64,000 nt of DNA from Macrostomum lignano. Taxonomy: Eukaryota. This document shows, one piece after another, positions 7,648 through 58,096 of this stretch. The stretch lies in contig NIVC01000104.1 of assembly GCA_002269645.1 (NCBI GenBank), positions 372,001 through 436,000 on the forward strand. The letters run 5' to 3'. The position numbers were made by a program, and so were the translations under genes. How positions within the stretch are numbered: position 1 is the stretch's first letter; every line of letters starts with the position of its first letter. The notes under the pieces were generated by a model, which saw only the letters and a list, made by a program, of their open reading frames with translations, did not search any database and was not told the origin of the DNA.

Positions 7648-9363
7648 GGGGGGGGGGGGGGGGGCAGGGGTATGGGTGGTCAACCCCCTACCCCAGCGAA
7701 TTTTTATAGAGTTAGAGCAGCGCCAGCGCATTACGCTAAAATCTCACAAAAACGCATTAGGTGCTCGTACTAAAAACTGCCGACGCTCAATTGCTGGATG
7801 CTTAGACGAGTGAGAAAAACGATTAATGATTAAAGTACAGTGTGTACCTAAATAAAATCCTGCTGAGCTACACTAGTTAGCAACAGCTATTAATTTCATA
7901 CTTGAAAAAGAAGTTAGGCAATGTCGGTGATTATTAATGCACAAACGAACCGGAACTGCCAAATTGCCACCTGTCGTGACATGAGGGACGTATAGCCACG
8001 ATATAAATTCTATTCTATTTGACTGGGCGCCATCCTGAAGTTCAAGAACTCGTCAACTGACATAGCTGAACTTCGCGATTTAAATTAAGGGCAGGTTTAT
8101 CTTTTGCCGAGTTTCGTTTAGTTAATAACTGACTATAAAATATTATTGATTGCAAAAAATTTAAAATTAGCCACCCGTCATAACCCATCGGCCATCAATA
8201 ACATCAAACGTCGCTCCTTCCCGGTTGCGTGTGTGTCCGTGCGTCGGATCGATAAAGTCCCTCACTCCCATGACCACCCGCCCCTCCCCTGACTGCGTAC
8301 ATTTCTCCAGCTAATTGATTTGCAGTCGGTTCTCTTTTCCCCTCGTTCCTTCTCGCTCGCTGATTGGCTAGGTAGCGAGCCTTCCCTCCCTACTCGCGAT
8401 AGTAGGGTAGTACGTAAAGTTAACCAATTGGAGTAAGTTGTAAATGAAAGCTTAGTCATGTCCACGATCTTGTAGATTTCATTACCTTTAATTAATTCGA
8501 ATTCTTTCGATTTATTGCATCTAAAAATCCTCATTAACGGCAACAAAGACTTTTCTTACCATTATATGCATATGAAAATCGCACACCAACTGATCTCATA
8601 CACGCCTCACTCAATGCGTGCATGAGTATTGAAATTTCATATTGTAATTTCATACTGTTTGCTTCTTTCTTACCTTACCGAACATTCATAATTGATTTTC
8701 GCGTGTCAAAATTTATGCCTAATTTTTGCATTAATAATTTCTGTTTTCTTTGATTTTCTTACAGAGGCCACTGTCTTTTGGATGTCTTCAATAAAATGTA
8801 TTCGTATATTAAGAAAGAACCTTTTGTGAACAATTTTTCAGCCCTGCGTAAGATTTAAAATATTTTAGAGTTATTTTTAAACTATACATGTGACATGTAG
8901 TTTTCTGTTTGTCTCTAGTTATAGCAATATTATACGGTCATTTTCTTACCAAAAGTGTCGTATGTATTCAATAGTATGTATAGTTAAAGCATGCGCTAGA
9001 AGCCTTTAAAAATTAAATTATTCGTACTTTTCACTTGGTTACGTAATTTTATATCAGTACTGTATGTACTTTACATACAGATTATATGCAGGATATTCTG
9101 TATGGACATGTCTGTAACGTGCCACCTAAGTCTGTCAGAGCATTTTAAATCTACGATAAAATATCATTAATTTTCCTTGTTGATTTATGAGATAAATGTA
9201 ACACGTCTGTTATTTACATCTAACTGATTTTTAGGGTGCGTTCGAGTAGCTTTAAATGTCCGTAAATGACTTAAAATAACTTTAAATCATTTTTAACTGA
9301 CATTGAAACGTACGAGCCTACTCAGTAACTAAGAATATTGACTCATGATTGACTGGCTGACTG

Positions 9364-10613
9364 ACTAACTGGGATTGAAGCAACTGGGATTAAAGCAACT
9401 GGGATTAAAGCAACTGGGATTAAAGCAACTGGGATTAAAGCAACTGGGATTAAAGCAACTCGGATTAAAGCAACTGGGATTAAAGCAACTGGGATTAAAG
9501 CAACTGGGATTAAAGCAACTGGGATTAAAGCAACTGGGATTAAAGCAACTGGGATTAAAGCAACTGGGATTAAAGCAACTGGGATTAAAGCAACTGGGAT
9601 TAAAGCAACTGGGATTAAAGCAACTGGGATTAAAGCAACTGGGATTAAAGCAACTGGGATTAAAGCAACTGGGATTAAAGCAACTGGGATTAAAGCAACT
9701 GGGATTAAAGCAACTGGGATTAAAGCAACTGGGATTAAAGCAACTGGGATTAAAGCAACTGGGATTAAAGCAACTGGGATTAAAGCAACTGGGATTAAAG
9801 CAACTGGGATTAAAGCAACTGGGATTAAAGCAACTGGGATTAAAGCAACTGGGATTAAAGCAACTGGGATTAAAGCAACTGGGATTAAAGCAACTGGGAT
9901 TAAAGCAACTGGGATTAAAGCAACTGGGATTAAAGCAACTGGGATTAAAGCAACTGGGATTAAAGCAACTGGGATTAAAGCAACTGGGATTAAAGCAACT
10001 GGGATTAAAGCAACTGGGATTAAAGCAACTGGGATTAAAGCAACTGGGATTAAAGCAACTGGGATTAAAGCAACTGGGATTAAAGCAACTGGGATTAAAG
10101 CAACTGGGATTAAATCAACTGGGATTAAAGCAACTGGGATTAAAGCAACTGGGATTAAATCAACTGGGATTAAAGCAACTGGGATTAAAGCAACTGGGAT
10201 TAAAGCAACTGGGATTAAAGCAACTGGGATTAAATCAACTGGGATTAAAGCAACTGAGATTAAAGCAACTCGGATTAAATCAACTGGGATTAAAGCAACT
10301 GGGATTAAAGCAACTGGGATTAAAGCAACTGGGATTAAAGCAACTGGGATTAACGCAACTGGGATTAAAGCAACTGGGATTAAATCAACTGGGATTAAAG
10401 CAACTGGGACTAAAGCAAATGGGATTAAAGCAACTGGGATAAAGCAACTGGGATTAAATCAACTGGGATAAAGCAACTGGGATTAAATCAACTGGGATAA
10501 AGCAACTGGGATTAAATCAACTGGGATTAAAGCAACTGGGATTAAATCAACTGGGATTAAAGCAACTGGGATTAAAGCAACTGGGATTAAATCAACTGGG
10601 ATTAAAGCAACTG
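9364..10613 (+). repeat. 15-bp tandem array (AAGCAACTGGGATTA)n, about 83 units
   Basis: Directly visible. It accounts for the (KQLGL)n ORF. Confidence 0.98.
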
Positions 10614-15822: not shown

Positions 15823-17284
15823 CTCAGCCAACAACTGGACGGCTCATCTAGCAGCGGTAGAAAAAGCAACACTGCTGGCAGCAATAAAAGCAAGCAGGGC
15901 AAAGAGAAAGACAAAGCTGATCGAGAATCTTCCCCATCGACAACCTGCGGAGTTCTCCAGATGTTCTCCAGCAGTAGCGGCGGCGGCGGCGGAGGCGAAG
16001 TAGCTCAGGGCGATGGCTGCGGAAACAACAGCGTTAAGGGTGTCGGCCAAAGCAGCACTTTGAGCACCGCGTCGGGAGCTCCTTCAGCCTCTGCTGAGTC
16101 CTGATGATTCCCACAATGTCCCAACACAGGGGCGCCTCAGTTTCTCCAATTCATTTTCACCGTTGATGTGTAATACGGTTCCACTACGGTCGATCTGGCA
16201 ACAAAAACAATTTAATGCATCTAAAGCTATTTTACACCTGGCGGGTTATTGGTATAAACGGTACCTTTTGCCGCAAATAACTACTACTTCACCTGTAAAC
16301 ATCTACAATAAAGAATAATATACAATATTTTAAAAAAAACATACAGCTAATATGCAAATAACCTTTTAAATGAAGAAATGAGAAGCTTTCTCTATGTCTT
16401 ACTTTTTAATAATCCAAACACGAAATTTGAATTGAGCGGTGTTCTTACTCAAACAGAGCTCAGCGGATTCGAACCCGGTAATTATTAGATTGTATTTTTA
16501 GTTGGTGCAGTTTTTGTTTAGTGAAAAATTTGTAACTGAACTAAAGGAGAAGAGTTCAAAAATAACAAATATTAATGACCGGTATAGTGAAGCCGCCACT
16601 AGATTTCAATGGCATGGCTACACATCCCGCGGTTTAGATGTACGAGCTACCAAGAATGTTCGTAAGCCTACTGCGCCACATAAACATGAACATTTATTTA
16701 ACGTAGACCAATACGATTGCAGCTCATTCGGTTGTACTTATTGTAGCTCAGTGTCCGACTCTCGAACTGTAAGTGCAGTTCCGTGCTCGACTCAATTCCG
16801 TGCTCGACTCAATTCCGTGCTCGACATCATTAAATTGGGGCTAGTACATGAAAATTGGTCTCCAAGGCGTCCCAGAGCATCCGGAAGGCTATAGCAGCAT
16901 GGAACACAAATAGACTGCACTCTGTACTTCTCAAGCCAATTCTTAAGGAGTAAAGTGTCTAAAGAGTCTAAATATGTGCCTGCTTAGTGCCTTAGCAACT
17001 CGGTTGCACTGAACTGTCATTTAAACTTAACTAAACTTAGACTGTCATTACGCTTTACTATGCAAGCGAACGTCAATCAAAGTCATAAAGAGTCATAAGA
17101 GTCAAATAGACTATTCAGCTATTCACTCTTGCACTGACGAAACTGTTAAACACTCTTTTGATTGCTGAGCTGTCATCGAGCAAACCAATTCTGCCTAATC
17201 TTCACAGACAAGCAAGCCATGCAGTCTCTGCTCCGCCCTTCTCACATGAAGGCTTTCAACTCAACCAACGTCGCCGCTCCGACC

Positions 17285-17320
17285 GGAAACACGTGCCCAA
17301 TCCGATGTGCATAAATTCGC
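17285..17320 (+). promoter_or_regulatory. Putative core promoter of prepropeptide gene 1
   Basis: CACGTG (E-box), CCAAT and a TATA-like CATAAAT lie about 80-105 bp upstream of the ATG. The arrangement is retained in copy 2. Confidence 0.4.
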
Positions 17321-17396
17321 ATCTGCCGACTGCTCAAGATAACAAGCTCAGACTCGACTCAGCTCAAACACTCGAATCGATCCTACTCAAGCAATC

Positions 17397-17585
17397 ATGA
17401 AGTGGCAACTCGCTCTCGGACTTTTGCTGTGCGCAGCCCTGGCTGTCGCCGTGCCCACCCAGGAGGAGAAGGCTGAGGCCATGGCCGTTCTGGAGGCTCT
17501 GTCCAACGTGGACGAGTCCAGCATGTCGGAGGAGGCCGTCGACCACGCCAAGAAGTTTGTCAGGGTCAGGGTTAGGCTTGGTTAA
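17397..17585 (+). CDS. Secreted prepropeptide 1 (62 aa): signal peptide + acidic spacer + KK + FVRVRVRL-G; predicted amidated cationic peptide
   Basis: MKWQLALGLLLCAALAVA is a typical signal peptide ending in an A-X-A site. The spacer has 9 D/E residues. It is followed by dibasic KK and a terminal Gly before the stop. The ORF is intact in a second copy. Confidence 0.8.
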   Translation: MKWQLALGLLLCAALAVAVPTQEEKAEAMAVLEALSNVDESSMSEEAVDHAKKFVRVRVRLG

Positions 17586-18403
17586 ATGCTACCGCAGCCA
17601 CACCTCACATCCAGCTCACTTTACCGAAGCTTGAGACTCGCTGGCACTGACGACAACTCACAAATGACCTTTGAACTTTGAATCCCGACCGCAAAATCAC
17701 GGTTGTATTGACTGATCCGTTTTACAAAATATACCATCGAGAACACAGATTAAGATCTCAACAGCACATTAAGCTTTGTCTTATTGAACATTTTCAATTT
17801 CGCCCAGTCGCCAGTCCAGTCTTTGCGTAGTGAACTGGTACTTGAAATTATTTGAAGATAATCATTGATTGTAACTTGATAGTTACTACTGGAAGGTTTT
17901 GATTTGCTAAATCTCCTTATTAACGGCTACAAAGCATTGGGGAAAAAGTGTAAGGCAGGAAAAATGCGTCGCGGGCAAGTCTCGTGCTCCCGAGCGCAAA
18001 ATGGTGGCATTGCGTAAGGCAGTGGTCGACACCGTCAAGCAGTATTGCGCTAAGACACAGGAAGCTCTGACTAACTCCCTGGAGAACCTACGAGTAGTTG
18101 ACGCATTTCACGCTGAGGTATGGTGCCATACCTGCAAGAACAGGCACGATTCTACGGTTCGTCGACAGCCCGGGCTCTGAGCTTCATTATCTGTATTTTG
18201 TATGGCCGAGAGTTTCCCAGCATGTTTAGGATCCGAGTAAAACCTTTTAGATTGGGGATTGTCAGTTTTGCAATGAACGGAAAGTGACAAGCAGCTTGAT
18301 TTATGAGATAAATATTTTATGAGACGCTTAACACTCCTACCCAGCAGTCCTTGGTACCGTCCAAGAATTCATAATAGTAAAATGTTCTCCAGAAGCGCCG
18401 GAG

Positions 18404-19238
18404 TGTTTCTGTGGATGTATTCGACAGCGCAGCATGTAACATGTCCCTCGGCCCATTTACTGCTGGAGTGTTTCTGCCGATGTAGTCGACTGCGCAGCAT
18501 GTAACATGTCCCTCGGCCCTTTTACTGCCAGAGTGTTTCTGCCGATGTAGCCGACTGCGCAGCATGTAACATGTCCCTCGGCCCTTTTACTGCCAGAGTG
18601 TTTCTGCCGATGTAGTCGACTGCGCAGCATGTAACATGTCCCTCGGCCATTTACTGCTGGAGTGTTTCTGCCGATGTAGTCGACTGCGCAGCATGTAACA
18701 TGTCCCTCGGCCCTTTTACTGCCAGAGTGTTTCTGCCGATGTAGTCGACTGCGCAGCATGTAACATGTCCCTCGGCCCTTTTACTGCCAGAGTGTTTCTG
18801 CCGATGTAGTCGACTGCGCAGCATGTGACATGTCCCTCGGCCCTTTTACTGCCAGAGTGTTTCTGCCGATGTAGTCGACTGCGCAGCATGTAACATGTCC
18901 CTCGGCCCATTTACTGCTGGAGTGTTTCTGCCGATGTAGTCGACTGCGCAGCATGTAACATGTCCCTCGGCCCTTTTACTGCCAGAGTGTTTCTGCCGAT
19001 GTAGTCGACTGCGCAGCATGTGACATGTCCCTCGGCCATTTACTGCTGGAGTGTTTCTGCCGATGTAGTCGACTGCGCAGCATGTAACATGTCCCTCGGC
19101 CCTTTTACTGCCAGAGTGTTTCTGCCGATGTAGTCGACTGCGCAGCATGTAACATGTCCCTCGGCCCTTTTACTGCCAGAGTGTTTCTGCCGATGTAGTC
19201 GACTGCGCAGCATGTAACATGTCCCTCGGCCCATTTAC
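18404..19238 (-). repeat. 65-bp minisatellite, 13 units, derived from integrase CDS
   Basis: Unit TGTTTCTGCCGATGTAGTCGACTGCGCAGCATGTAACATGTCCCTCGGCCCTTTTACTGCCAGAG. The motif GTCCCTCGGCC occurs 13 times. Confidence 0.95.
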
Positions 19239-19811
19239 TTTAGGCGTCAACGAGTAAAAGTAGGTGCTTGTCCCTTGAAAGGTCCAGCGTAGTCTGGGTG
19301 CACTCGACACCACTTCCCGTTCTCTTCCGTCCCTGCCACAGTTCCATTGATTTCACTTCCCATGAGACTGGAATGCTTTGTGATCCTTGTGTCGCGCATC
19401 CAGCTTGCATTGTGGAGCTGTCTTATTGACTAACAAAGTGTCAATCCCTTTCATTTCTCTTTCGCTGCGCGGGACAGCTTCACATGCACTGACCAAACTT
19501 CACCTTCTCCCAAGTGATGTCCTTCAATTTTTCCTTAAGGAGCTTTCTGACAATCTACTTGATGGCCAAGCCAAATACAAACTGGTGGCGGAGCCTATCG
19601 TTCAGGCCTGTCAATTCGAAGCTCTCGACCGCCTGATGAAGCCTTCTGGAGTAAACAGCAGGTGTGTCTTCGCTATCCTCTTGCTTCAGATAGTGAAAGA
19701 CGTACCGATAGACCAGTCCTGACCTTTATCGCCTTTGATTCTTTAGAAGTTCGTTCAGCTCGTCGAAAGTATTGTCTTTTGGTTTGTGAGGGAGTAAGGC
19801 CAGCAGGTTAA

Positions 19812-20638
19812 CCATTTGGAAGCCAAAGGCCTGCACTGCAGGCCATACCGAAACGGCCCAGAAACCCAGAGATTGAAAAATGTCTATGGCATCAAAAACC
19901 ATCTCCCAATCACTAAAGCAAGTGCCCAGTATGGCCTGCTGTGCAGGCCATGACTGATTTAAAGACGTCCATTATGCATTTCCATTGTGTTTTCACTCAA
20001 ATGGGAAATGTTAAAGGGGAATTAAAGCGTGGATGAATTAGCATGGATCTGGACAGAGACCAGGATTTCCGGGACATTGGCTGCAGCAAAATACTGTCTT
20101 CTTAGCTGGAACGTCAGGTTTCAAATTCGGAATCGTTTGCTTGGGCGAGTCTGGGCTTCCGTTGCTGGGAGTCGTTCGTGTACGAGTATATGTGGTATCC
20201 TTCGCCCAGCACTTCGCGACTAAGCTCAGCAACAACTCTCGCTCTCTTCCTCGCCATTTTCTGCACTCTCCTGCTGGAACTCCCTGACTGCCAATCACAT
20301 TCGCTCATTAGTCCATGTGACAAGACTGTGGTGAGAAACTCTTCAGTCAGGATCAATTTCTGGATCCATGCCTTCCGACTCCGTTTCTGACTCAAAAACC
20401 GTCGAGTCATTGCTTGATAAAGCGTCTTCCGAATCGGAATCGAGTCCCAGTCTACGCAAGGCGTCACTTTTAGCTGTCCTATTCGGCCGCGTAAAAGCCA
20501 TTTGTGGGTAGGAAGGTTTGAACAGGAGCTAGCTGAAAAACTATGTGATATAATTTACTTCTGGGCTTCTAGGGTGTGCACTCGATTCAGCAAAAAAGAC
20601 AAATTTGTCTATGGACTGCTCTGCAGGCCTTTGGGCTT
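19812..20638 (-). mobile_element. Degenerate piggyBac-like element inserted at TTAA in the Gypsy gag
   Basis: Left end TTAA|CCATTTGGAAGCCAAAGGCCTGCA. Inverted TGCAGGCCTTTGG at 20622-20634, followed by TTAA at 20639-20642. The internal minus-strand remnant ...DWDSIPIRKTLYQAMTRRF...RVVAELSREVLGEGYHIY resembles piggyBac transposase motifs (MSRNRF; LLGKGYHLYxDN). Confidence 0.55.
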
Positions 20639-21337
20639 TTAAGCCATCTTACAGAACCAAGCTTGGGCGCGCGCTATCCTCTTGCTTCCGACAGTGAAAG
20701 ACGTACCGATAGACCAGCCCGGACTTTGATTCTTTAGAAGTTCGTTCAGCTCGTCGAAAGTCTTGTCTTGTGGTTTGTGAGGGAGTAAGGCCAGCAGGTT
20801 AAAGGCTTTTTTACCGAGCTGATCGATGAATGCGTGTCTTTAGGACTTCCTCCTCCCACTTATTGACTTTCGCGATTGCCTCCAATGGTTGAAGGCATCG
20901 GCTCACTTCAGCCGAGATGTCTATCTCCAGGGTTTGATCACAATCGTCGACAGTGCTGGTTTTCGTTGGAACGGAAGGCAACAAGCAGCTTTATTGGCGA
21001 TGTAGCAAGCAGCTACGAATTAAAGCCTCCTGTTGAGCAGCTCATCAGCTCATCACTGTTACGCTTGTTCGATTTTGAGCCTTGTGGCTCCGCGCACACG
21101 TTTTTGGCAATCGAAGGTCAGGGGAATAACTTAAACAGAGATTTCCTGTAAGCACACAATCTAGATATTCTTACGAGGCGGCTAACAGGGATTATATTGG
21201 CTAGATCTGATATCGAAGTCGCTTCATCGAAGACTGAGGCTGACTGAAACTGACAGCTCGCAGCTGACCGAACTGCGGCTTTTCGTGTAATTCTCGCCAA
21301 TATTTCAAAACGATGAGCACTTCAGAGTCAATAAAGT

Positions 21338-22257
21338 GTCAATCAAAGTCATAAAAAGGTCATAAGAGTCAAATGACTATTCAGCTGCATACACTTGCAC
21401 TGAGAAAACTCTGCTAAACACACTTTTGATTGCTTAGCTGTCATGAAGCAAACAATGATGTCTCATCTTCACAGACAAGCAAGCCATGCAGTCTCTGCTC
21501 CGCCCTTCTCAAATGAAGGCTTTCAACTCAACCAACGTCGCCGCTCCGACCGGAAACACGTGCCAATCCGATGTGCATAAATTCGCATCTGCCGACTGCT
21601 CAAGATAACAAGCTCAGACTCGACTCAGCTCAAACACTCGAATCGATCCTACTCAAGCAATCATGAAGTGGCAACTCGCTCTCGGACTTTTGCTGTGCGC
21701 AGCCCTGGCTGTCGCTGTGCCCACCCAGGAGGAGAAGGCTGAGGCCATGGCCGTTCTGGAGGCTCTGTCCAACGTGGACGAGTCCAGCATGTCGGAGGAG
21801 GCCGTCGACAACGCCAAGAAGTTTGTCAGGGTCAGGGCTAGGATTAGGCTTGGTTAAATGCTACCGCAGCCACACCTGAGATCCAGCTCACTTCATCGGA
21901 GCTTGAGACTCGCTGGCTCTGACGACAACTCACAGACGACCGGACTCTGAACTTTTGACTCCAGACTGATCAGTTTAACGAAATATAACATCGCTTGAAC
22001 GTTTTGTTTTACATCTCATCAGAAATTAAGCTTCTTTTAATTTAAACAATTTTAATTTCATCAATCACTTGGGCTTGTTTGCAGATAATTGATTATTGTA
22101 ACTCATTTTTTAAGCCTAAATTCGATGTGGCATTGCGTCAGGCAGTGGTCGACACCGTCAAGCAGCATAACGCTGAAACACAAGGGAAGCTCTGACAAAC
22201 TCCCTTGAGCACCTACGAGCAGTTTGAGTAGTCCTTGTTGATGCGTTTCACGCTGAG
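21338..22257 (+). repeat. Segmental duplicate, copy 2
   Basis: Homologous to 17072-18117. Near-identical around the promoter and CDS, diverged distally. Confidence 0.95.
21663..21857 (+). CDS. Secreted prepropeptide 2 (64 aa): KK + FVRVRARIRL-G
   Basis: Paralogue of 17397-17585. Differences: one synonymous change (GCC/GCT), H->N in the spacer, and an altered, 2-aa longer mature peptide that keeps the R/hydrophobic alternation and the terminal G. Confidence 0.8.
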   Translation: MKWQLALGLLLCAALAVAVPTQEEKAEAMAVLEALSNVDESSMSEEAVDNAKKFVRVRARIRLG

Positions 22258-22486: not shown

Positions 22487-24868
22487 TCAATCAATATCGC
22501 TGTCTCCGCTGCCGCTAGCACCGTCGACGCTCTCGTTGCCATAGTAACCAGCCGCCACGCGTCCTCCCTGACAGATTTTCGACGAACAACGCGGATCGCC
22601 GTTTTCATCTCGCAATTCGCCGCCTAAATAAGCGGGCAGCTGGTCGGGCGCGACTCGATCCAGTAGCTCCATCGTAGCCTGCCGCGGGTCGCTGCTGAGC
22701 ACGTGGATTTTGTTGCGCATAGCTGTGGATAGCAAAGGCTGGCAAAGGCGGTACAGTAACGGAAACACCTGTGCGGATTGGGAGTTCATATTTTATTGAT
22801 GCAGTCCAACCGATATCACTAGTGTAGGAACCAACCTAACAAATCTAATCACCAATCTGACTAGTCTAGTCACCAATCTGACTAATCTAGTCACCAATCT
22901 GACTAATCTAGTCACCAATCTGACTAATCTAGTCACTAATCTGACTAATCTAGTCACCAATCTGACTAATCTAGTCACCAATCTGACTAATCTAATCACC
23001 AATCTGACTAATCTAGTCACTAATCTGACTAATCTAGTCACCAATCTGACTAATCTAGTCACTAATCTGACTAATCTAGTCACCAATCTGACTAATCTAG
23101 TCACTAATCTGACTAATCTAATCACCAATCTGACTAATCTAGTCACTAATCTGACTAATCTAGTCACCAATCTGACTAATCTAGTCACCAATCTGACTAA
23201 TCTAGTCACTAATCTGACTAATCTAGTCACCAATCTGACTAATCTAGTCACCAATCTGACTAATCTAATCACCAATCTGACTAATCTAGTCACTAATCTG
23301 ACTAATCTAGTCACCAATCTGACTAATCTAGTCACCAATCTGACTAATCTAGTCACTAATCTGACTAATCTAGTCACCAATCTGACTAGATCCAATTCAA
23401 ACATATCTGTGACTAATCATTCCCAAATCGAGGTTTGCCTACTGTGGGACTATTGACCACCAGCAGCTGGCTGACAAGTTCGGGATAATTATCTTCCAGC
23501 ATTCGGACCAGCCGCAGGTAGGCGGTCACTCCCGGCGGCCATAGAAAACGCGCCGTAGCACCAGCCATGTCGAAAATCACTGTCATACCGATCACCGGCC
23601 GGCCAAGGCGCCGGGTCTGGCGCCGGCAAAGGCGCAGCGCCAATTCGCACTCGCGCAGTTTGGCTCGGCGCAGATGGCGCCATCGACTGGCGCGCAATAG
23701 TCCGGGCAGATCCAGGGCGCCGAATAGTTCGACTCGAACTGGCCGACCCGAGCGATCGAAGCCGACAAAACCGCCGGACAGATGGCGGCGAAGGACCTCC
23801 GGCAGGCGCTGCTCAGCCTGCGGAGTGAGCAGCCGTTCCGGCCGATGACGCAGACGGAAGTCGGCAGCGGTATTGTACATTGCGACCGCCGAATCCAGGT
23901 CCCAGTTGCGGGCGACTAGCCATCTGTTAGATTTGTTTGTACTGCAGCTATGTAAACAGACGACTAGACAGATGAGTAAGGGGGGCCGAATCCTAGTCTA
24001 GTGCGGCACTCTAATGTGCCAGCGGCTCAGATGTGGGGCTAAATTGGAATCCCGGCTTGGCTCTGCTCGTGCAATTAACGGCCTTGAGGACCAACCCCCA
24101 AGGCACAGTGAAGTGTACATGCCTAACGATAAATAAAGTTAGGGCCGCTGTACACTCCTGTGTGAGTGTGTGCCTGTGCGTATGACTGCGTACGTATCTG
24201 TGCGCTTGTGTGCCTGCTCAGGGGAGTCGGCGGAATGGGTTGTGTGGCAGTGTCGCTTAAAGTGCGCCCAGGGTGCACACAGCCCCTACTGTAATAAAAA
24301 ATATATGAGTAGATGAGCAGCTAGTAGCTAGATAAGTAGATAGCTGAGTATGTCAGCATCTAGATGAGTAGATAGCTGAGTACGTCAGCACTTAGATGAG
24401 TAGATGAGCAGCTAGATTAGTAGCTAGATGAGTAGATAGCTGAGTATGTCAGTATCTAGATGAGTAGATAGCTGAGTACGTCAGCACTTAGATGAGTAGA
24501 TAGCTGAGTATGTCAGTATCTAGATGAGTAGATAGCTGAGTACGTCAGCACTTAGATGAGTAGATAGCTGAGTATGTCAGTATCTAGATGAGTAGATAGC
24601 TGAGTACGTCAGCACTTAGATGAATAGATAGCTGAGTAGATCACCTGCGCAGATTGTCATCAGTTTGAGCAAAGCGTCTGGCTGATTCAACTGTCGCATC
24701 GCAGTCCTCTTCATCCGTGTCATTGTCTTGATAGTCCCGCACTCCATGGACCCTGGAATCTTCTGTCGAGGTAATCAGCAGGTGAGTAACAATCTGTTGT
24801 TTAAACTGCTCAAGCAGAATCGTCTCCTGCTGAACATTATCTGAGCTTCCAGCGACATAATGAGCCAT
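22487..24868 (-). CDS. SEC14L2/3/4-like CRAL-TRIO lipid-transfer protein; complement(join(22487..22768,23443..23923,24645..24868)), about 328 aa
   Basis: GT-AG junctions give TDDNLRR|WLVARNWDLDSAVAM (CRAL-TRIO N-terminal region), then GGFVGFDRSGRPVRVE...VIFDM...LEDNYPE...LLVVNSPT|VFPLLYRLCQPLL...PDQLPAYLGG...GDPRCSSKICQGG. These are hallmark SEC14L2-family motifs. Confidence 0.9.
22850..23390 (+). repeat. 21-bp minisatellite (CTAATCTAGTCAC(C/T)AATCTGA)n in SEC14 intron 2
   Basis: About 25 units. It accounts for the (RLVTRLV)n ORF. Confidence 0.97.
23980..24301 (+). mobile_element. tRNA-derived SINE with a partly deleted head, same family as 48273-48638
   Basis: Body (GGCCTTGAG...CAACCCCCAAGG...AAAGTTAGGGCC...GCTCAGGGGAGTCGGCGGAATGGG...CTTAAAGTGCGCC...GGGTGCACAC) matches the reverse complement of the 48.3-48.6 kb copy. 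A-rich tail. Confidence 0.85.
24305..24640 (+). repeat. About 32-bp tandem repeat (GATGAGTAGATAGCTGAGTA(C/T)GTCAG...) in SEC14 intron 1
   Basis: Directly visible. It abuts the exon-1 donor site. Confidence 0.9.
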
Positions 24869-31294: not shown

Positions 31295-46976
<15,682 letters not shown>

Positions 46977-51593: not shown

Positions 51594-54500
51594 ATGTCCG
51601 AAACGGAGCAAGGCACGGAGCCTGAGGTGGACAGCGGGGACGACTTGCCATTGAGCCACGCCTCATCAATATCCGGCCGTGGCATCGGCGGGCCTCAGGC
51701 TCGTCTGGCCAAATTGAAAATCAAAATCGGGCCGCAGGAGATGCTCCAAACGGACATTGTGGACACCCCGGATCCGTCCGAGGGGCCGGACGAGTCTTAT
51801 AGCGGCAGCACCTGCTCAGATGAGAACAACAGCGAGCCAGTGTCTCCGGCCACCACTGCATCGACAGGCGATTGTCGCGCTGGCAACCTCCTACTCAGCG
51901 GCGCGCATCATCTGAAGCGAGCCGAGTCTGTGGAATCTGAGCTGTCTTCTGTGGATAGGTGAGTGCTAATTGGGGGACTCTGCATCTGGTGATCCACGTG
52001 CTGGGCCACCATCGCTTTCCTTCCCAAATCCCCAATATTTGCGCTTGGCCACACTTGCTGATCTTCAGTTGCTGGGCCAGCCTCCCAGATCCTCAGTTGC
52101 TGGGCCAGCCTCCCAGATCCTCAGTTGCTAGGCGAGCCTCCAAGATCCTTAGTTGCTAGACCAGCCTCCCAGTGTGTCAGTTGCTGGGCCAGCCTCCCAG
52201 AGTGTCAGTTGCTGGGCCAGCCTCCCAGAGTGTCAGTTGCTTGGCCAGCCTCCCAGATCCTCAGCTTCTGGGCTGTCAGTCTTTCCTAGTTGTTTCATTT
52301 AAGTAGCACCTGCTACTATAAGCAAAACAATAATGGAAAGTTTTGTCTCAATATCTCGCCTGTCGCTAATAATTTCTAAATGCTTTAGCTGTCGAACAGG
52401 CTAGTCAAAAAAGACAGAAAAAACAGTTCATATAATGTGGGCCTCTGTTTTCGTTATTTGATATTGGCCTGTAAATTTGCTTTAGAGATAAAATCAATCA
52501 GTATCACCCCCCCTTGCGATTGCAATAATATTTACCTGAATTTGATGCTTTGCTGGCGAAACGAGTGAGTCTGTTTATGAAGGAAGTTAATTAGACAAAA
52601 TTAATCTCATCTCTAATCTGCTACAAAACGGAAATTGATATCCTTGCAATTAGAAACTCACTCGTGTGAAATAAAAATTAATTAGCGAGAGTTGCCTGTC
52701 ACACAAGACCGTTAAAATCTCTGATAGCTTTTAAGAGGCCTGCTCATAAAGTGAGGCTTTCAGACTACTTGATGTATGTGGAATCGCCTTCCAACCTCAA
52801 AGAATTGCCCTCAACCTCGAATCAAAAATCGCCCTCAACCTCCCATCAAGAATCGGCCTCCAACACCATCAAGAATCGCCCTCCAACTCCCATCAAGAAT
52901 CGCCCTCAACCTCTCATCAAGAATCGCCCTCCAACAACATCAAGAATCGCCCTCCAACCCCATCAAGAATCGCCCTCAACCTCTCATCAAGAATCGCCCT
53001 CCAACAACACCAAGAATCGCCCTCCAACCCCATTAAGAATCGCCCTCCAACCCCATCAAGAATCGCCCTCCAACAACATCAAGAATCGCCCTCCAACCCC
53101 ATCAAGAATCGCCCTCAACCTCTCATCAAGAATCGCCCTCCAACAACATCAAGAATCGCCCTCCAACCCCATCAAGAATCGCCCTCAACCTCTCATCAAG
53201 AATCGCCCTCCAACCCCATTAAGAATCGCCCTCCAACCCCATCAAGAATCGCCCTCCAACAACATCAAGAATCGCTTTCAACCTCCCATCAAGAATCGCC
53301 CTCCAACCCCATCAAGAATCGCCCTCCAACAACATCAAGAATCGCCCTCCAACAACATCAAGAATCGCTCTCAACCTCCCATCAAGAATCGCCCTCCAAC
53401 CCCATCAAGAATCGCCCTCCAACCCCATCAAGAATCGCCCTCCAACCCCATCAAGAATCGCCCTTCAACAACATCAAGAATTGCCCTCCAACCCCATCAA
53501 GAATCGCCCTCAACCTCTCATCAAGAATCGCCCTCAACCTCTCATCAAGAATCGCCCTCAACCTCCCATCAAGAATCGCCCTCAACCTCCCATCAAGAAT
53601 CGCCCTCAACCTCCCATCAAGAATCGCCCTCAACCTCCCATCAAGAATCGCCCTCAACCTCCCATCAAGAATCGCCCTCACCAGAGCCCAACCCCCACCA
53701 TCACGCAGCTACTCCGAGCCGAACACCCAACAGCAGCAGCAGCAGCAGCAACAGGCTGTCTGCGCATTCTGCAATCTGCCCGCATCAAACAGCGCATTTG
53801 GCCAAGGCTGCGGCGAGTTAGTCAGCTTCCGTTCCGGCTCTAGCGGCTCCGCTCAACTCAGCGCTCGCCGACCAGCCGGTGGTCGACGACGGCCACCGGC
53901 GACTCCGATGTCGTTGTCGGCGTCCACTAGCGGTGTCTCCACTCTCGACGACGTCGCCGCCTGTTGCCATGACGTTGCTAGGCGAATCCGAGACAGTCGG
54001 GCCTCGCTAGAAAGCCAACGAGCAGCCGGTTTGCCAAGCCCCTGGCTGGACTCGACTGGCCGACCCTACGGTCTTGTGGACGAGCTTGGCCGGATCGGAC
54101 ATGCCGAGGAGCCCGATCTTGTCCAGCTAGTTGACGCCGACCGGAATCTGTGGGCGCACCGGTCCTGTCTAATGTGGACTCCGGGCGCTTCGGCTACGGA
54201 TCCTGTGGCCGCTGAGCGAGCTCTGGTTGCTGCGCTAGGCTTAGCCTGCTCGTTCTGTCGCCAGCTGGGCGCCAGCGTGCCGTGCTCAGCGCCTCGCTGT
54301 CAGCGGCACTATCACGTGGTCTGTGCCGCGGCCGCCGGTTGTCTTCAAGACTGCTCGGACGCGCTCTCTGACGCTGCTATTGGCTCGAGTTCAGCTATCA
54401 GTAGTCAGTTACCCCGACTATGGTGCCTGGATCATCTGGCTATGGGCCGGTCGCCTGTCTGCTGCGTCTGCGACAGGTCCGCTTCTGGCGGCCAAGAAGC

Positions 54501-57500
54501 TGCCGATATGTTGTGCTGTACAGGCTGCGGTCAGCACTATCATCCGACTTGTATGGAGCCGAGAGTGACGCTTAGTCCCACAGTTAGAGTTGGTTGGCAG
54601 TGCCCAGAGTGCAAAGCATGCCAACAGTGCTGCGAGAATAAGAGTCCGGAGTTATTACTAATGTGCGACGTTTGCGACAAGGCCTATCACACTTATTGCC
54701 TTCGGCCGGCTATTGTGCAGGTGCCTCGCAATGGTTGGAAATGCGAACGCTGTCGGGTCTGTTTACAGTGCGGCCGGCGTTTCAGCTCCCGGTGGCACCG
54801 GAACTACACCAGGTGCGGTCGGTGTCGTCAGCGTAGCAGCGGCGGAGCATCCAGACCGGCGTTGCAGTCTGCAGGTGCTAGTCGGGCTTCGATGGCATCG
54901 TCTGGTGCTAGTAGATTATCGTCTGCAGCAACTGGCTCTTCATTGCTGCCGTCGCGGATGACGGCGTCGACGGCAACTGCGACGGGTTCGACCCCAGTCG
55001 CCGCGGTGTCGTCTACGTTGGCAAACGCAACAGCTGCTACGACTCCGGCTGCGTCTGACGAGTACGCCGAGGACAGCGGCCAGGACGACAACTCTGCAGA
55101 TGCCGACTGGGGTCCGCCTGGCGGCAGTGGGAAAGCCGCTGGGAAGCTGCCCCAACAGCAACATCAGCTTCGTCGACAATCGTCATCTTTGTCGGCAACT
55201 TCTTCGCGTCGAGTGCCGCCAGGCGGTCCGGCGGCCGCCGCTTCAAGTGTCGGTAAGAAAGGCTCTCGCAGCGGCGGTGGCGGCGGTCCGCGCTCATCAG
55301 GCGGCACTTCGGCTGGCCCCGCCGCGTCTAGGCGCTCGTCGACTTCGTCTAAATCTGGTCGGAAAGTTGGCGGCGGCGGCGACACTGCTGGTGGTAAAAG
55401 CGGCGCCGCGACCGCTGGCGGTATGGAGGACAAAGACGATCACCAGCTCACTATTGTTGTGTGCCGCGAGGAGGAAGAGCGCTTCTTTAATTCTCAGGTA
55501 AGTTGAGCTTAATACCACTGGTTAATCCCGTTAAATTAATGCTTTTTATTATAAAAAAGTCCATGTAAACTTTTTTAGACTTCTAATCTAAATATACTAA
55601 ATCTCTAATATTTGTTTGTATGTTTGCTTGCTTGTCAAACCTGCTAAATGTTTCGAAGTCCATACTAAATGACATTTACAAATTTTCGAAATGCCAGTAT
55701 ATCATAAACCAAATCGCCCGTTTTTCATAATCGGAATACCATACTTTATGTTGTTATATCTTCTACAAAATGAAATTCTTGTTACTTAGAAAGCAGGAAT
55801 CGACTTCTTAGAAATCTAGGTGCCATTTTCTACTAAATATAATTATTGTTTCTTAGAAATCTGGAATCGATCTCTTAGAATTCTAAGCGCCATTTTCTAC
55901 AAAATGAAATTATTGTTTCTTAGAAATCTAAGCGCCATTTTCTACTAAATGAAATTATTGTTTCTTAGAAATCTAAGCGCCTTTTTCTACTAAATGAAAT
56001 TATTGTTTCTTAGAAATCTAAGCGCCTTTTTCTACTAAATGAAATTCTTGTTTCTTAGAAATCTAAGCGCCTTTTTCTACTAAATGAAATTCTTGTTTCT
56101 TAGAAAGCGGGAATCGATTTCTTAGAAATCTAGGCGCCATCTTCTGCAATAAGAATTTTTTTTCTTAGAAATCGAGAATCGATTTCTAGTAAATCTTCTA
56201 GTAAATTCTAGTTAATCTATGCGCAACTTTCTACAAAATAAAATTCTTGTTTCTTAGAAAGCAGGAATCGATTTTCTAGAAATTTAATTTTTAAGTACTA
56301 TTTCTGTAAATATTGAAATCTGACTCCCTAGATACATGTAATTTGGAAGTTATTCTTAGAAATCAAATCTTAGTACAAGCATCGTTATTTATTAATCAAT
56401 AATCCGCAGGACGTGTGCTTAGCCTGCGGCGCAGTCGGCTACGGCCCCGAACAGAGGCTCATGTGCTGCGTGCAGTGCGGCCAATGCTATCACCCGTTCT
56501 GCGCCGGAGTCACTCGAGTCACGCCTGTTATGATTGAGAAAGGCTGGCGCTGTCTAGACTGTACAGTGTGCGAAGGCTGCGGCGATACCGACAGAGAGAA
56601 TCTATTGCTACTGTGTGACGATTGCGATATCTCGTATCACACATTCTGCTTGGATCCGCCGTTAACCGAGGTGCCAAAAGGCGCTTGGAAATGTCGGCAC
56701 TGCGTCATTTGCGGCCTGTGCGGCAGCCGCAGTCCCGGTTATAACTGCGCCTGGCAAAAGAACTTTACGCGTTGCGGCCCCTGTCAATCGTATTATAATT
56801 GTCCAATTTGCACGGCGCCCTATCGCGACGGCGACTTGCTGATCCACTGCGCCCAATGCGAACGATGGGGTCACGTGCTGTGCGACGGTTTAAAATCCGA
56901 GGCCGAAGCCGAAGCCGTGGCCGACTATGGCTACCTGTGCTATCATTGTCGCGGTCAGGAGCCGCTGCGAACGCCTGCTCTGGCTCGCCTGGCTGCCACC
57001 TCCGCTGCAGCCGCGGGCGGCTCCTCCGGTCTCGACACGACTAGCGGCGTCAACAACGGCGGCTATCAATCAGTATCGGCAGCGTTAGACGCCGTGATTG
57101 GTTGCGCTAGTAGCGGCTTAACTTCGCCTAGCTCCGTTGTCATTGGCAACGCTGCCGCTGGAAGCGTCGCCGGCGCATTAGTAGGTTCACACGGAGCTTC
57201 GGCCGCGTCTAACTCGGCCGCCGATCCGGACACGCCATCCAGACAGTTTTTCATGGACGGCGTAGTGCTGTCCGAGTCTGGTTTAAGCGTCATACGCAGC
57301 GTTATGCTCAAGATGCCAAAGAAAACTGCCGCGGGAGCCGGTAATGGCAAGTCTGGCGGCACCGCCCGTGCTCCGGTGGCTCCGCCGCCTGCGGCTGCTC
57401 AACAGCAACAACAGCAGCAACAGCAGCAACAGCAGCAGCTCAGCCGTCTTCTCGGCCACGGCCCAGCCGATCCGCCCGAGACAGCCGAATGTGAATCTCT

Positions 57501-58065
57501 GCAATCAAATCAAGATCTGCTAATGGAGATCAAATCGCCTAGTTTGCAGTCTGAGGAAGGCGGCGGCTTAGCCGGAGTTGGTGTCGGCGGCGTCAGCGTC
57601 GGTGGCCAGTTGTCTGAGTCCATTGCCAGTTCAACCGATGCTCAAACCGCCGCCTCGTCCGCTAGCAAGACTCAAGCGGCAGTAAAATCCTCTTCTAACA
57701 CCCCGGCCGCTAGTGCCGTTCGAATGCGTAAGCCCACTAATTTAGGCGTTGGCGGATTTCGGCCGCGTCAGCAGCGGATTAAACCGAGGAAGCCGTCCGG
57801 TCAGCAGCAGTCGTCCACCGCAGGCGCTTCGGCAGCCTCCGGCGGCGGCGCCAAGAAGCGTTCAACAAAGCGTCGAGTTGGCGACATTGAAGAGTCCTTC
57901 CCAGACTATCTGATGGAAGCATTCCTGGGCTCCGGGGCTTCCGCAGTTGGCGGCGGTACCGGCGGAACCGGAGGGAGCGGCGCCGGTGCAGCTCCGGCCC
58001 TATCGGACGCCGAGGAAGATTCAGATATGTCAGCCAGTGAGCTGATCATGAGTCCGGTAGCCGGC

Positions 58066-58096
<31 letters not shown>

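Follow-up and report, generated by a model that had tools for sequence, protein, structure and literature searches.

A multigene family in which a conserved signal peptide and an anionic propiece precede a hypervariable cationic C-terminal peptide is a signature of host defence, and amphibian precursors of the preprodermaseptin type have this organisation. For flatworms, almost no antimicrobial peptides (AMPs) are known to us, and we know of no described AMP repertoire. The present analysis concerns a 64,000-nt stretch of the genome of the flatworm Macrostomum lignano (assembly GCA_002269645.1, contig NIVC01000104.1, forward-strand positions 372,001–436,000; hereafter the window), in which two open reading frames (ORFs) very probably belong to a family of secreted, processed, cationic peptides. 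A host-defence or antimicrobial function of this family is proposed with moderate confidence. Judged by its sequences, the family is of a known kind, namely gene-encoded cationic secreted peptides with a conserved prepro module, but it is unnamed and has no detectable homology to a described family.

Like the preprodermaseptin-type precursors, the M. lignano proteins run from a signal through an acidic propiece and a dibasic site to a cationic peptide, with the Gly amide donor that is also frequent in amphibians, and they form a multigene family with conserved signal and propiece and a hypervariable mature domain. The two differ in that phmmer and hmmsearch find no sequence homology between these representatives of different phyla, the M. 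lignano genes are intronless and carry KK instead of KR, and their products include beta-strand alternators of 6–10 residues, whereas the amphibian peptides are helices of 10–35 residues. Cathelicidins similarly join one conserved pro-region to unrelated cationic C-terminal types (Pro/Arg-rich, helical, Cys-containing); the M. lignano pro-region, however, is an acidic segment of about 33 residues with neither a cathelin fold nor a Pfam match, and its processing would use a dibasic convertase and not elastase.

The designed beta-sheet antimicrobials IK8L (IRIKIRIK-NH2) and PEP8R share with the window's peptides strict hydrophobic/cationic alternation, a length of eight residues and a C-terminal amide, and the predicted FVRVRVRL-NH2 is almost a natural version of such designs. 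Those peptides are synthetic and their activity has been measured, whereas the M. lignano peptides are gene-encoded, known here from sequence, and start with an aromatic residue followed by a second hydrophobic one. The catalytic amyloid heptapeptides IHIHIQI and IHIHIYI resemble the predicted FIHIHF-NH2 and GFHVHFH-NH2 in their hydrophobic/His alternation over 6–7 residues (PMC8431744), a likeness limited to these His sister paralogues and not extending to the Arg peptides of the window. Flatworm and spiralian neuropeptide precursors (FLP/RFamide, FVRIamide, npp) also have a signal, dibasic cleavage and a Gly donor, and some M. lignano peptides would end in -RFamide, -RIamide or -RLamide; the mature region of the latter is, however, hypervariable and highly charged, the copy number is very high, and flatworm orthologues were not found.

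Three sister branches are already present in a supplementary table without having been recognised as one family. In the portion of Table S5 of Irvine et al. 2023 that is considered here, fAMP-LP 116, 142 and 544 (BOX15_Mlig025063g1/008283g1, Mlig024774g1/g2 and Mlig001477g4) belong to the superfamily of the window genes, whose signal and propiece they share, but they are entered as three unrelated groups with no recognition of the common prepro region; the 8–10-mer branch of the window is absent from that portion (PMC10414684).

Two precursor genes in the window

The ORF at 17397–17585 (+) encodes 62 aa, with the full translation MKWQLALGLLLCAALAVAVPTQEEKAEAMAVLEALSNVDESSMSEEAVDHAKKFVRVRVRLG followed by a stop, ending in KKFVRVRVRLG. 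The ORF at 21663–21857 (+) encodes 64 aa and specifies the same protein except for H50N and the tail KKFVRVRARIRLG, again followed by a stop. Both translations were checked and match the architecture given in the original prediction, that is, two intact ORFs with a signal, an acidic spacer containing nine D/E, KK, a cationic tail, Gly and stop. The genes lie 4.27 kb apart. A 27-mer that the genes share at the ATG is present twice in the window (zero expected), and tblastn of the window gives exactly two gene copies; neither a third copy nor an orphan promoter block was found in the window by tblastn and 15-mer counting, and no ORF in the window competes with either gene by overlap. The features of the two units, including their untranslated regions (UTRs), are as follows.

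17072–17689 (+): duplicated unit, copy 1 (promoter, gene, proximal 3'UTR); 92.4% identity to 21338–21966 by self-BLAST
17281–17316 (+): family promoter block, copy 1, GACCGGAAACACGTG; invariant among diverged paralogues
17284–17289, 17290–17295, 17297–17301, 17310–17316: parts of promoter block 1, namely ETS-like CGGAAA, E-box CACGTG, CCAAT and TATA-like CATAAAT
17346–17396 (+): 5'UTR, copy 1, minimum extent, from the start of the transcript-derived 5'-open ORF P0002
17397–17450 (+): signal peptide, copy 1, residues 1–18 (MKWQLALGLLLCAALAVA), predicted cleavage A-V-A/V-P
17451–17549 (+): acidic propiece, copy 1, residues 19–51; 9 D/E, 1 K
17550–17555 (+): dibasic KK processing site, copy 1; K at both positions invariant in the subfamily
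17556–17579 (+): predicted mature peptide FVRVRVRL
17559–17576 (+): hexanucleotide run GTC AGG GTC AGG GTT AGG, copy 1
17580–17585 (+): Gly62 (amide donor) and TAA stop, copy 1
17728–17733 (+): AATATA, possible poly(A) signal variant, copy 1, in a conserved 3'UTR block
18397–19239: 65-bp minisatellite between the genes; 13 copies, 95% matches
21338–21966 (+): duplicated unit, copy 2, from self-BLAST and alignment with copy 1
21548–21582 (+): family promoter block, copy 2, GACCGGAAACACGTG; CCAAT 21563–21567, CATAAAT 21576–21582
21663–21716 (+): signal peptide, copy 2; one synonymous difference from copy 1
21717–21821 (+): acidic propiece (residues 19–51, H50N relative to copy 1) and KK, copy 2
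21822–21851 (+): predicted mature peptide FVRVRARIRL
21825–21848 (+): run GTC AGG GTC AGG GCT AGG ATT AGG, copy 2
21852–21857 (+): Gly64 (amide donor) and TAA stop, copy 2
21982–21987 (+): AATATA, possible poly(A) signal variant, copy 2

A secretory signal is evident in the sequence from its hydrophobic core, agreement with the -3/-1 rule and the A-V-A/V site, and is predicted to be cleaved after Ala18 (A-V-A/V-P). The propiece spans V19–A51, 33 residues with nine D/E and a single K. AATATA recurs in 7/7 aligned family 3'UTRs and is a possible poly(A) signal.

A multigene superfamily with unrelated peptide tails

The original prediction spoke of duplicated genes and proposed that the family be enumerated by tblastn. 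Two copies in the window is correct, but the description understates a multigene superfamily: tblastn of the family against 11 further fetched M. lignano loci recovered 25 intact copies of the window subfamily, plus fragments and pseudogenes, with 13 distinct mature ends. The copies mostly lie in tandem clusters, with five intact within 20 kb at one locus (L002); about 150 kb from this locus, its contig carries a further cluster, made up of five GFHVHFH genes. All 25 retain the start codon, a KK or KKK site and the C-terminal Gly; frame, start, KK and Gly-stop are intact despite up to ~30% protein divergence.

The mature ends are FVRVRVRL, FVRVRARIRL, FVRARVRVRL, FIRARVRVRL, WLRVRARVRI, WLRVRARVRV(GSRRRSRSG), FVRVHVRF, FVRLRVRI, IFRVRVRI, IFRVHVRF, IFRVRVHI, IFRVRARIHI and FIHIHF. 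In 12 of the 13 the Gly-stop follows the mature end directly, and the thirteenth has an internal Gly and ends in RSG-stop; it corresponds to L004 8725–8913 (minus; P0005, P0041, P0042), where the Gly-stop was lost and the frame reads through as WLRVRARVRV-G-SRRRSRSG. Both Lys of the dibasic site are invariant in the subfamily; in the superfamily the second is invariant and the first nearly so.

First-round searches of a collection of 5.8 billion proteins gave 15 matches, all annotated "hypothetical protein BOX15_Mlig..." of M. lignano. Distant relatives came from two profile searches, one covering 1.84 billion representative proteins exhaustively and the other run on the larger collection. In these relatives a signal of the form M[KR]WQ[LF][AV]LGLLLC... 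is again followed by an acidic propiece and then a dibasic site, but the tails are unrelated; in the superfamily alignment the signal is recognisable, the propiece is acidic throughout and the tails cannot be aligned. Tail types comprise Arg/hydrophobic or His/hydrophobic alternating, Pro/Arg-rich (such as FLRVRLPRVRMPRVRLPRVRLPRLRVRFRWSKK) and Arg/Trp/Tyr-rich sequences, and one tail, WRIKSACKIFRRLLHLARKCYAKKG, has two Cys. Others are WRRRRRFRWRKAIRVAGKVAKAVL, FRIRIRWGRVARNVLRLLGK, WLLRRIRIRWRRVLRVASRVYRIYRYLPIGK, LFFRRRRRRHYFVYHSRRRYYRRRYHRRHHVHIVAYHG, GFHVHFHG, FHLHLPGK and AVYKPNYYKD. The majority terminate in G, GK or GKR, the classical amidation signals.

Some members depart from this pattern. 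P0021 and P0035 (BOX15_Mlig020534 and Mlig023778) carry the non-cationic Tyr/Lys/Pro tails AVYKPNYYKD and AVYKPNYNKD, a type reminiscent of mussel adhesive-protein decapeptides, which hints that the prepro module may also export peptides unlike AMPs. P0001 (BOX15_Mlig004661g1) contains an internal duplication of 24 propiece residues, and P0043 (BOX15_Mlig001477g4) has two consecutive signal-plus-propiece starts; these may be either real duplications or fused gene models.

Beyond M. lignano, phmmer and hmmsearch against both collections (5.8 billion proteins and 1.84 billion representatives) gave nothing except P0016 and one spurious match. Orthologues in other flatworms were likewise not found in these collections, the genomes of other Macrostomum species lying outside the search. 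P0016, the sole relative not traceable to the M. lignano assembly, is encoded on a 929-nt genomic contig from Logan run SRR31628392 (L012, 541–813). In it, the family prepro region is followed by a Pro/Arg-rich tail of 31 residues. Its protein identity to M. lignano members does not exceed 59%, it is preceded by a promoter related, but not identical, to the family block, and its source may be another Macrostomum species or line. A Pfam-A scan of both window precursors gave nothing above the gathering threshold (Lock_Gag1-like 16.6 bits against 27, ATP19 13.9 against 27). The absence of any named family, as originally stated, agrees with these Pfam and profile searches, which returned no described family.

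Divergence among the 11 distinct subfamily coding sequences (CDS), expressed as Nei–Gojobori counts summed over non-independent pairs, rises along the precursor from the 5' to the 3' end: pS, pN and their ratio are 0.11, 0.03 and 0.29 for the signal, 0.19, 0.17 and 0.87 for the propiece, and 0.43, 0.28 and 0.65 for the mature part. The signal (pN 0.03) is the most conserved coding part of the family.

Promoter, transcription and splicing

A block of the form GAC-CGGAAA-CACGTG-CCAAT-N8-CATAAAT precedes every subfamily gene, even where DNA farther upstream has diverged. Its 15-mer GACCGGAAANACGTG occurs in the window only at the two genes (2 against 0.01 expected) and, in the fetched loci, precedes most family genes, among them members of distant branches (five in L013, one in L014). 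The superfamily-wide form, GACCGGAAA-N-ACGTG ... CATAAAT, lies 115–135 nt 5' of the ATG in most genes checked. The motif suggests ETS-like and E-box binding factors, and its conservation suggests that the superfamily may be co-regulated and produced by one cell type.

The GenBank Mlig_3_7 annotation is based on a genome-guided RNA-seq transcriptome (StringTie, TACO, TBONE) and is not ab initio (PMC5730564). Many family models in it are "5'-partial" ORFs that run from the 5'UTR into the ATG. Among them P0002, which represents the window's own gene, reads AQTRLSSNTRIDPTQAI-MKWQ... and starts at 17346, about 30 nt 3' of the CATAAAT at 17310–17316. In GenBank, the CDS of relatives consist of one uninterrupted block each (240 nt, for 79 aa and a stop). 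Splicing from a GT within the GTCAGG run appears only in P0005, an ab initio model of the older ML2 assembly, whereas the transcript-based P0041 and P0042 from the same locus read through to VRVGSRRRSRSG and a stop. The name "SERPIN domain-containing protein" attached to P0005 (UniProt A0A1I8G6Q8) was rejected, being derived from a spliced model that P0041 and P0042 contradict. Since the transcript-based models are unspliced, the family genes are taken as transcribed, with CDS free of introns; the window genes are treated in the same way, on the annotation of transcript-derived relatives rather than on reads from the window copies. The genes had been called intronless from the outset, and splicing out of the GTCAGG run is not borne out, as transcript-based models continue to the Gly-stop.

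Divergence of the gene pair

Substitution divergence between the two units is 13.5% in 17072–17199, falls to 0.5% in 17200–17396 (promoter and 5'UTR) and 1.1% in the CDS, and rises to 7.8% and then 29% in the 3'UTR. Of 385 aligned sites in the core (17200–17585), three are substituted, whereas the flanks have 45 substitutions in 279 sites (Fisher p = 5e-15). Within the core, the two copies differ by one substitution and a 1-nt indel in the promoter, a synonymous change, H50N and one 6-nt insertion. Such homogeneity of the core, including its non-coding DNA, points to gene conversion or a very recent duplication. All that separates the mature peptides is this one 6-nt indel (CTAGGA), out of phase, at 17571; by it GTT becomes GCT-AGG-ATT and V becomes A-R-I.

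The pair was originally described as having an almost invariant signal and spacer and a variable mature part. The identity is real, but the non-coding promoter and 5'UTR are as invariant as the CDS, so that the constancy of signal and spacer within the pair is not a protein-level signal, and the contrast with the mature part comes down to one indel. At family level, on the other hand, the conserved front and variable tail are borne out by the divergence gradient over the 11 CDS.

Three versions of the tandem pair could be compared, and between them 6-nt units have been repeatedly gained or lost while the remaining CDS stayed constant. The window pair has an 8-mer and a 10-mer tail; the L001 pair, a collinear homeologue or allele with ~96% identity, has FVRARVRVRL and a 10-mer; the L011 pair, another segmental copy, has two 8-mers. 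The genes of the L001 and L011 pairs are ~2.8 kb apart against 4.27 kb in the window, partly because of the 65-bp minisatellite, and the unequal spacing means that the array differs in length between the locus copies.

A second similar block, 18004–18099 against 22127–22224 (88% identity by self-BLAST), sits ~420 nt 3' of the gene in copy 1 and ~270 nt in copy 2, beyond a dissimilar stretch. In copy 1 it overlaps a 59-aa ORF (18001–18180). It could be distal 3'UTR, an enhancer or a repeat fragment.

Predicted mature peptides

Following established rules of the regulated secretory pathway, the predicted products are FVRVRVRL-NH2 (M 1042.688, net charge +4) and FVRVRARIRL-NH2 (M 1283.841, net charge +5). 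Their [M+2H]2+ ions would lie at 522.351 and 642.928; with KK retained the masses would be 1298.878 and 1540.031, and those of the free propieces 3515.592 and 3492.576. Their hydrophobic moment is maximal at 180 degrees (1.34 and 1.41), in line with the amphipathic beta-strand periodicity anticipated for them. For the 12 amidated subfamily peptides tested, the moment peaks close to or at 180 degrees (FIHIHF, 160) and is low at 100 degrees; in an extended strand, Arg and His occupy one face and Val, Ile, Leu, Phe and Ala the opposite one. Net charge of these 12 is +3 to +5, except for the all-His FIHIHF at +1. The longer superfamily tails have moment peaks at 80–105 or 150–180 degrees and charges of +7 to +15. 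A per-peptide shuffle test of alternation is weak with peptides so short (p = 0.03–0.15 each), and the argument from alternation therefore rests on its consistency among paralogues.

Proposed host-defence role and alternative functions

After removal of the signal, a PC2-type convertase would cut behind KK, a carboxypeptidase would trim the lysines, and the terminal Gly would be converted to the amide, giving FVRVRVRL-NH2 and FVRVRARIRL-NH2; a PC2 homologue exists in M. lignano (PMC4490696). Within the secretory pathway the anionic propiece would neutralise the cationic peptide. Once released, the peptides would serve as host-defence (antimicrobial) effectors that act on anionic microbial membranes as amphipathic beta-strands, the Arg face turned towards lipid head groups and the Val/Ile/Leu/Phe face inserted, as for the designed IRIKIRIK-NH2. 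A hexanucleotide run, (GTY-AGG)n, that gains and loses 6-nt units codes for the alternating tail; peptide diversity would arise from this repeat slippage, from R/H point changes and from tail replacement, while gene conversion would keep promoter, signal and propiece uniform.

Several lines of evidence favour this proposal. A secretory signal, a cationic amphipathic mature peptide and a multigene family with conserved prepro region and hypervariable mature part are all found, and the range of tails (Pro/Arg-rich, Arg/Trp-rich, Cys-containing, alternating strands) is that expected in host-defence families and not in neuropeptide families. Independent support comes from the pipeline of Irvine et al. 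2023, which combined SignalP 4.1, ProP and 11 AMP predictors: in Table S5, BOX15_Mlig024774g1/g2 are AMP-like by 100% of predictors, Mlig008283g1/025063g1 by 91% and 73%, and Mlig001477g4 by 82%, and SignalP 4.1 is positive for BOX15_Mlig024774g1, whose signal is near-identical to that of the window genes (PMC10414684). According to the same source, the three branches were binned as "Same genome" or "Ungrouped" and then dropped as species-specific, and predicted peptides shorter than 10 aa were removed, which accounts for the lack of the window's 8-mers in the S5 list (PMC10414684). Analogy with synthetic alternating peptides lends functional plausibility: broad bactericidal activity and protection of mice are documented for the designed 8-mer IRIKIRIK (PMC4330034), and PEP8R, a hairpin based on VRVRVRVR, yields gels that are antibacterial (PMC9582762). 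With a conserved prepro region, hypervariable cationic tails and AMP-pipeline flags, the antimicrobial reading is the best supported one. It was already favoured in the original prediction and has gained from the superfamily tails, the divergence gradient and the flags, while the function itself is deduced, with confidence no higher than moderate.

A number of points weigh against this function. The peptides, with 8–10 residues, are short by the standard of natural AMPs; M. lignano is marine, and sea-water salt weakens electrostatic membrane binding; AMP predictors are prone to false positives. Some paralogues (FIHIHF-NH2, GFHVHFH-NH2) are barely cationic at neutral pH, the tail AVYKPNYYKD has no antimicrobial look at all, and both cleavage and amidation are themselves predicted. 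The mature peptide gives no sign of positive selection among the 11 subfamily CDS (pN/pS 0.65, not above 1). Literature searches yielded nothing on where the genes are expressed, on a response to infection, on detection by peptidomics or on measured activity: the family gene identifiers had no match in full texts or in supplements of M. lignano papers apart from one unrelated gene sharing a transcription-unit number, the literal peptide strings had no relevant match in 8.3 million full texts, and publications on Macrostomum with antimicrobial peptides or neuropeptides contained nothing on this family. The window's own 8-mers, moreover, fall below the 10-aa cut-off of the pipeline (PMC10414684).

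The same strand geometry would also suit a secreted material, an unlikely alternative in which Arg/His–hydrophobic alternators self-assemble into beta-sheet fibrils, or coacervate with metal ions or with polyanions such as the co-released acidic propiece or sulfated mucus, to serve in mucus, rhabdites, adhesive, cement or eggshell. Strict alternation, with a moment maximum at 180 degrees, is the rule by which self-assembling beta-sheet peptides and hydrogels are designed; several superfamily tails are rich in Arg, Tyr and His, one being AVYKPNYYKD; and sea-water salt would be expected to screen Arg repulsion and favour assembly. FIHIHF-NH2, GFHVHFH-NH2 and FHLHLP-NH2 are akin to designed Zn-dependent amyloid heptapeptides such as IHIHIQI (PMC8431744). 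Nevertheless, 8–10-mers with charges of +4 to +5 are usually soluble, WRRRRRFRWRKAIRVAGKVAKAVL and the Pro/Arg-rich 31-mer are AMP types active on membranes or intracellular targets and not assembling units, and structural secretions seldom need dozens of hypervariable paralogues.

Lineage specificity, tandem expansion and fast divergence are equally features of reproductive and venom peptides, and the precursor layout is identical to that of linear venom peptides. The family could accordingly be directed at other animals or mates, as seminal-fluid, prostate, toxin or allomone peptides evolving fast under sexual or ecological conflict, and many prostate-limited M. lignano transcripts reportedly lack homologues. 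The searched supplements, however, contain no family identifiers and hence provide no link to tail or gland, and the chemistry of the peptides is generically membrane-active rather than receptor-specific, so this account too is judged unlikely.

Distinctly unlikely is a neuropeptide or hormone function, in which one amidated peptide per precursor would be released from neurons onto a G-protein-coupled receptor or a peptide-gated channel; a neuropeptide role was the alternative named in the original prediction. The signal, dibasic site and C-terminal Gly are standard neuropeptide processing signals, -RFamide ends are predicted for FVRVHVRF-NH2 and IFRVHVRF-NH2 and -RLamide or -RIamide for others, and flatworm neuropeptide genes are often lineage-specific. 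A conserved bioactive core, as expected of neuropeptides, is not what is observed: the predicted mature region is the least conserved and varies in length, shifting by repeat slippage and exchanging R for H. Superfamily tails reach 29–37 residues and charges of +11 to +15, unlike any neuropeptide, at least 25 near-redundant copies exist, and no orthologue from another flatworm turned up among the 5.8 billion proteins and 1.84 billion representatives searched. Hypervariable tails and copy number have thus weakened this alternative, in spite of the -RFamide ends of some paralogues.

The genome is repeat-rich and recently polyploid, the identity of the pair extends into non-coding DNA, and several copies are pseudogenised. 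That the ORFs are chance or decaying frames within a segmentally duplicated repeat is nevertheless very improbable: 25 copies keep frame, start, KK and Gly-stop, the signal has a pN/pS of 0.29, the promoter block persists amid diverged upstream DNA, and the annotation is transcript-based.

Novelty and significance

Two features mark out the host-defence candidates described here, namely natural peptides of 6–10 residues with strict Arg/hydrophobic or His/hydrophobic alternation, and diversification driven by a coding microsatellite combined with gene conversion of the constant module. It is tempting to go further and to regard the family as the first gene-encoded AMP superfamily of a free-living flatworm, in which slippage of (GTY-AGG)n, that is (Val-Arg)n, generates part of the diversity and the peptides act not in soluble form but as amyloid-like assemblies on microbes or in mucus. 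FVRVRVRL-NH2, FIHIHF-NH2 and GFHVHFH-NH2 would then correspond in nature to designed self-assembling antimicrobials of the beta-sheet type and to Zn-dependent catalytic amyloids, and gene conversion would freeze promoter, signal and propiece; in this complete form the proposal is rather unlikely to hold.

If confirmed, a clustered and co-regulated cationic peptide superfamily would help to fill the flatworm AMP gap, and its amidated Cys-free alternators of 8–10 residues would be among the shortest natural host-defence peptides. At the level of mechanism, the locus illustrates how slippage of a coding hexanucleotide can produce length variants while gene conversion maintains a constant secretion and processing module. 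The close resemblance of the window peptides to chemical designs made from first principles allows cheap synthesis and testing, M. lignano is a convenient test species with transgenesis, RNA interference and a single-nucleus atlas, and the 35-bp promoter block could readily serve to mark the producing cell type or to drive a reporter in it.

Other features of the window

The remaining content of the window fits an animal genome. A CRAL-TRIO domain exon (23413–23880, minus) is adjoined by a 21-bp minisatellite (22830–23388, 26.6 copies), and the same gene flanks the peptide pair in L001. A non-long-terminal-repeat retrotransposon occupies 32474–37816; it has an ORF1-like frame of 520 aa without a Pfam match and an ORF2 (34396–37569, 1057 aa) whose domains are endonuclease, reverse transcriptase and RNase H. 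The C-terminal part of ORF2 continues in an overlapping frame at 37013–37816, suggesting a frameshift. Two long exons at 53908–59325 belong to a Gln-rich gene with multiple PHD fingers, which by its appearance we take to be a chromatin regulator of the KMT2C/D (trr/LPT) type, and a 23–24-bp minisatellite (52845–53560) lies before it. Long homogeneous minisatellites are unusually numerous, with further arrays at 9217–10442, 39252–40800, 43236–43700, 44107–44790 and 61633–62400 (periods of 15, 29, 8, 19 and 22 bp), the 15-bp array comprising ~80 copies that are 99% identical. Over its first 4 kb the window has a strong purine skew and low complexity.

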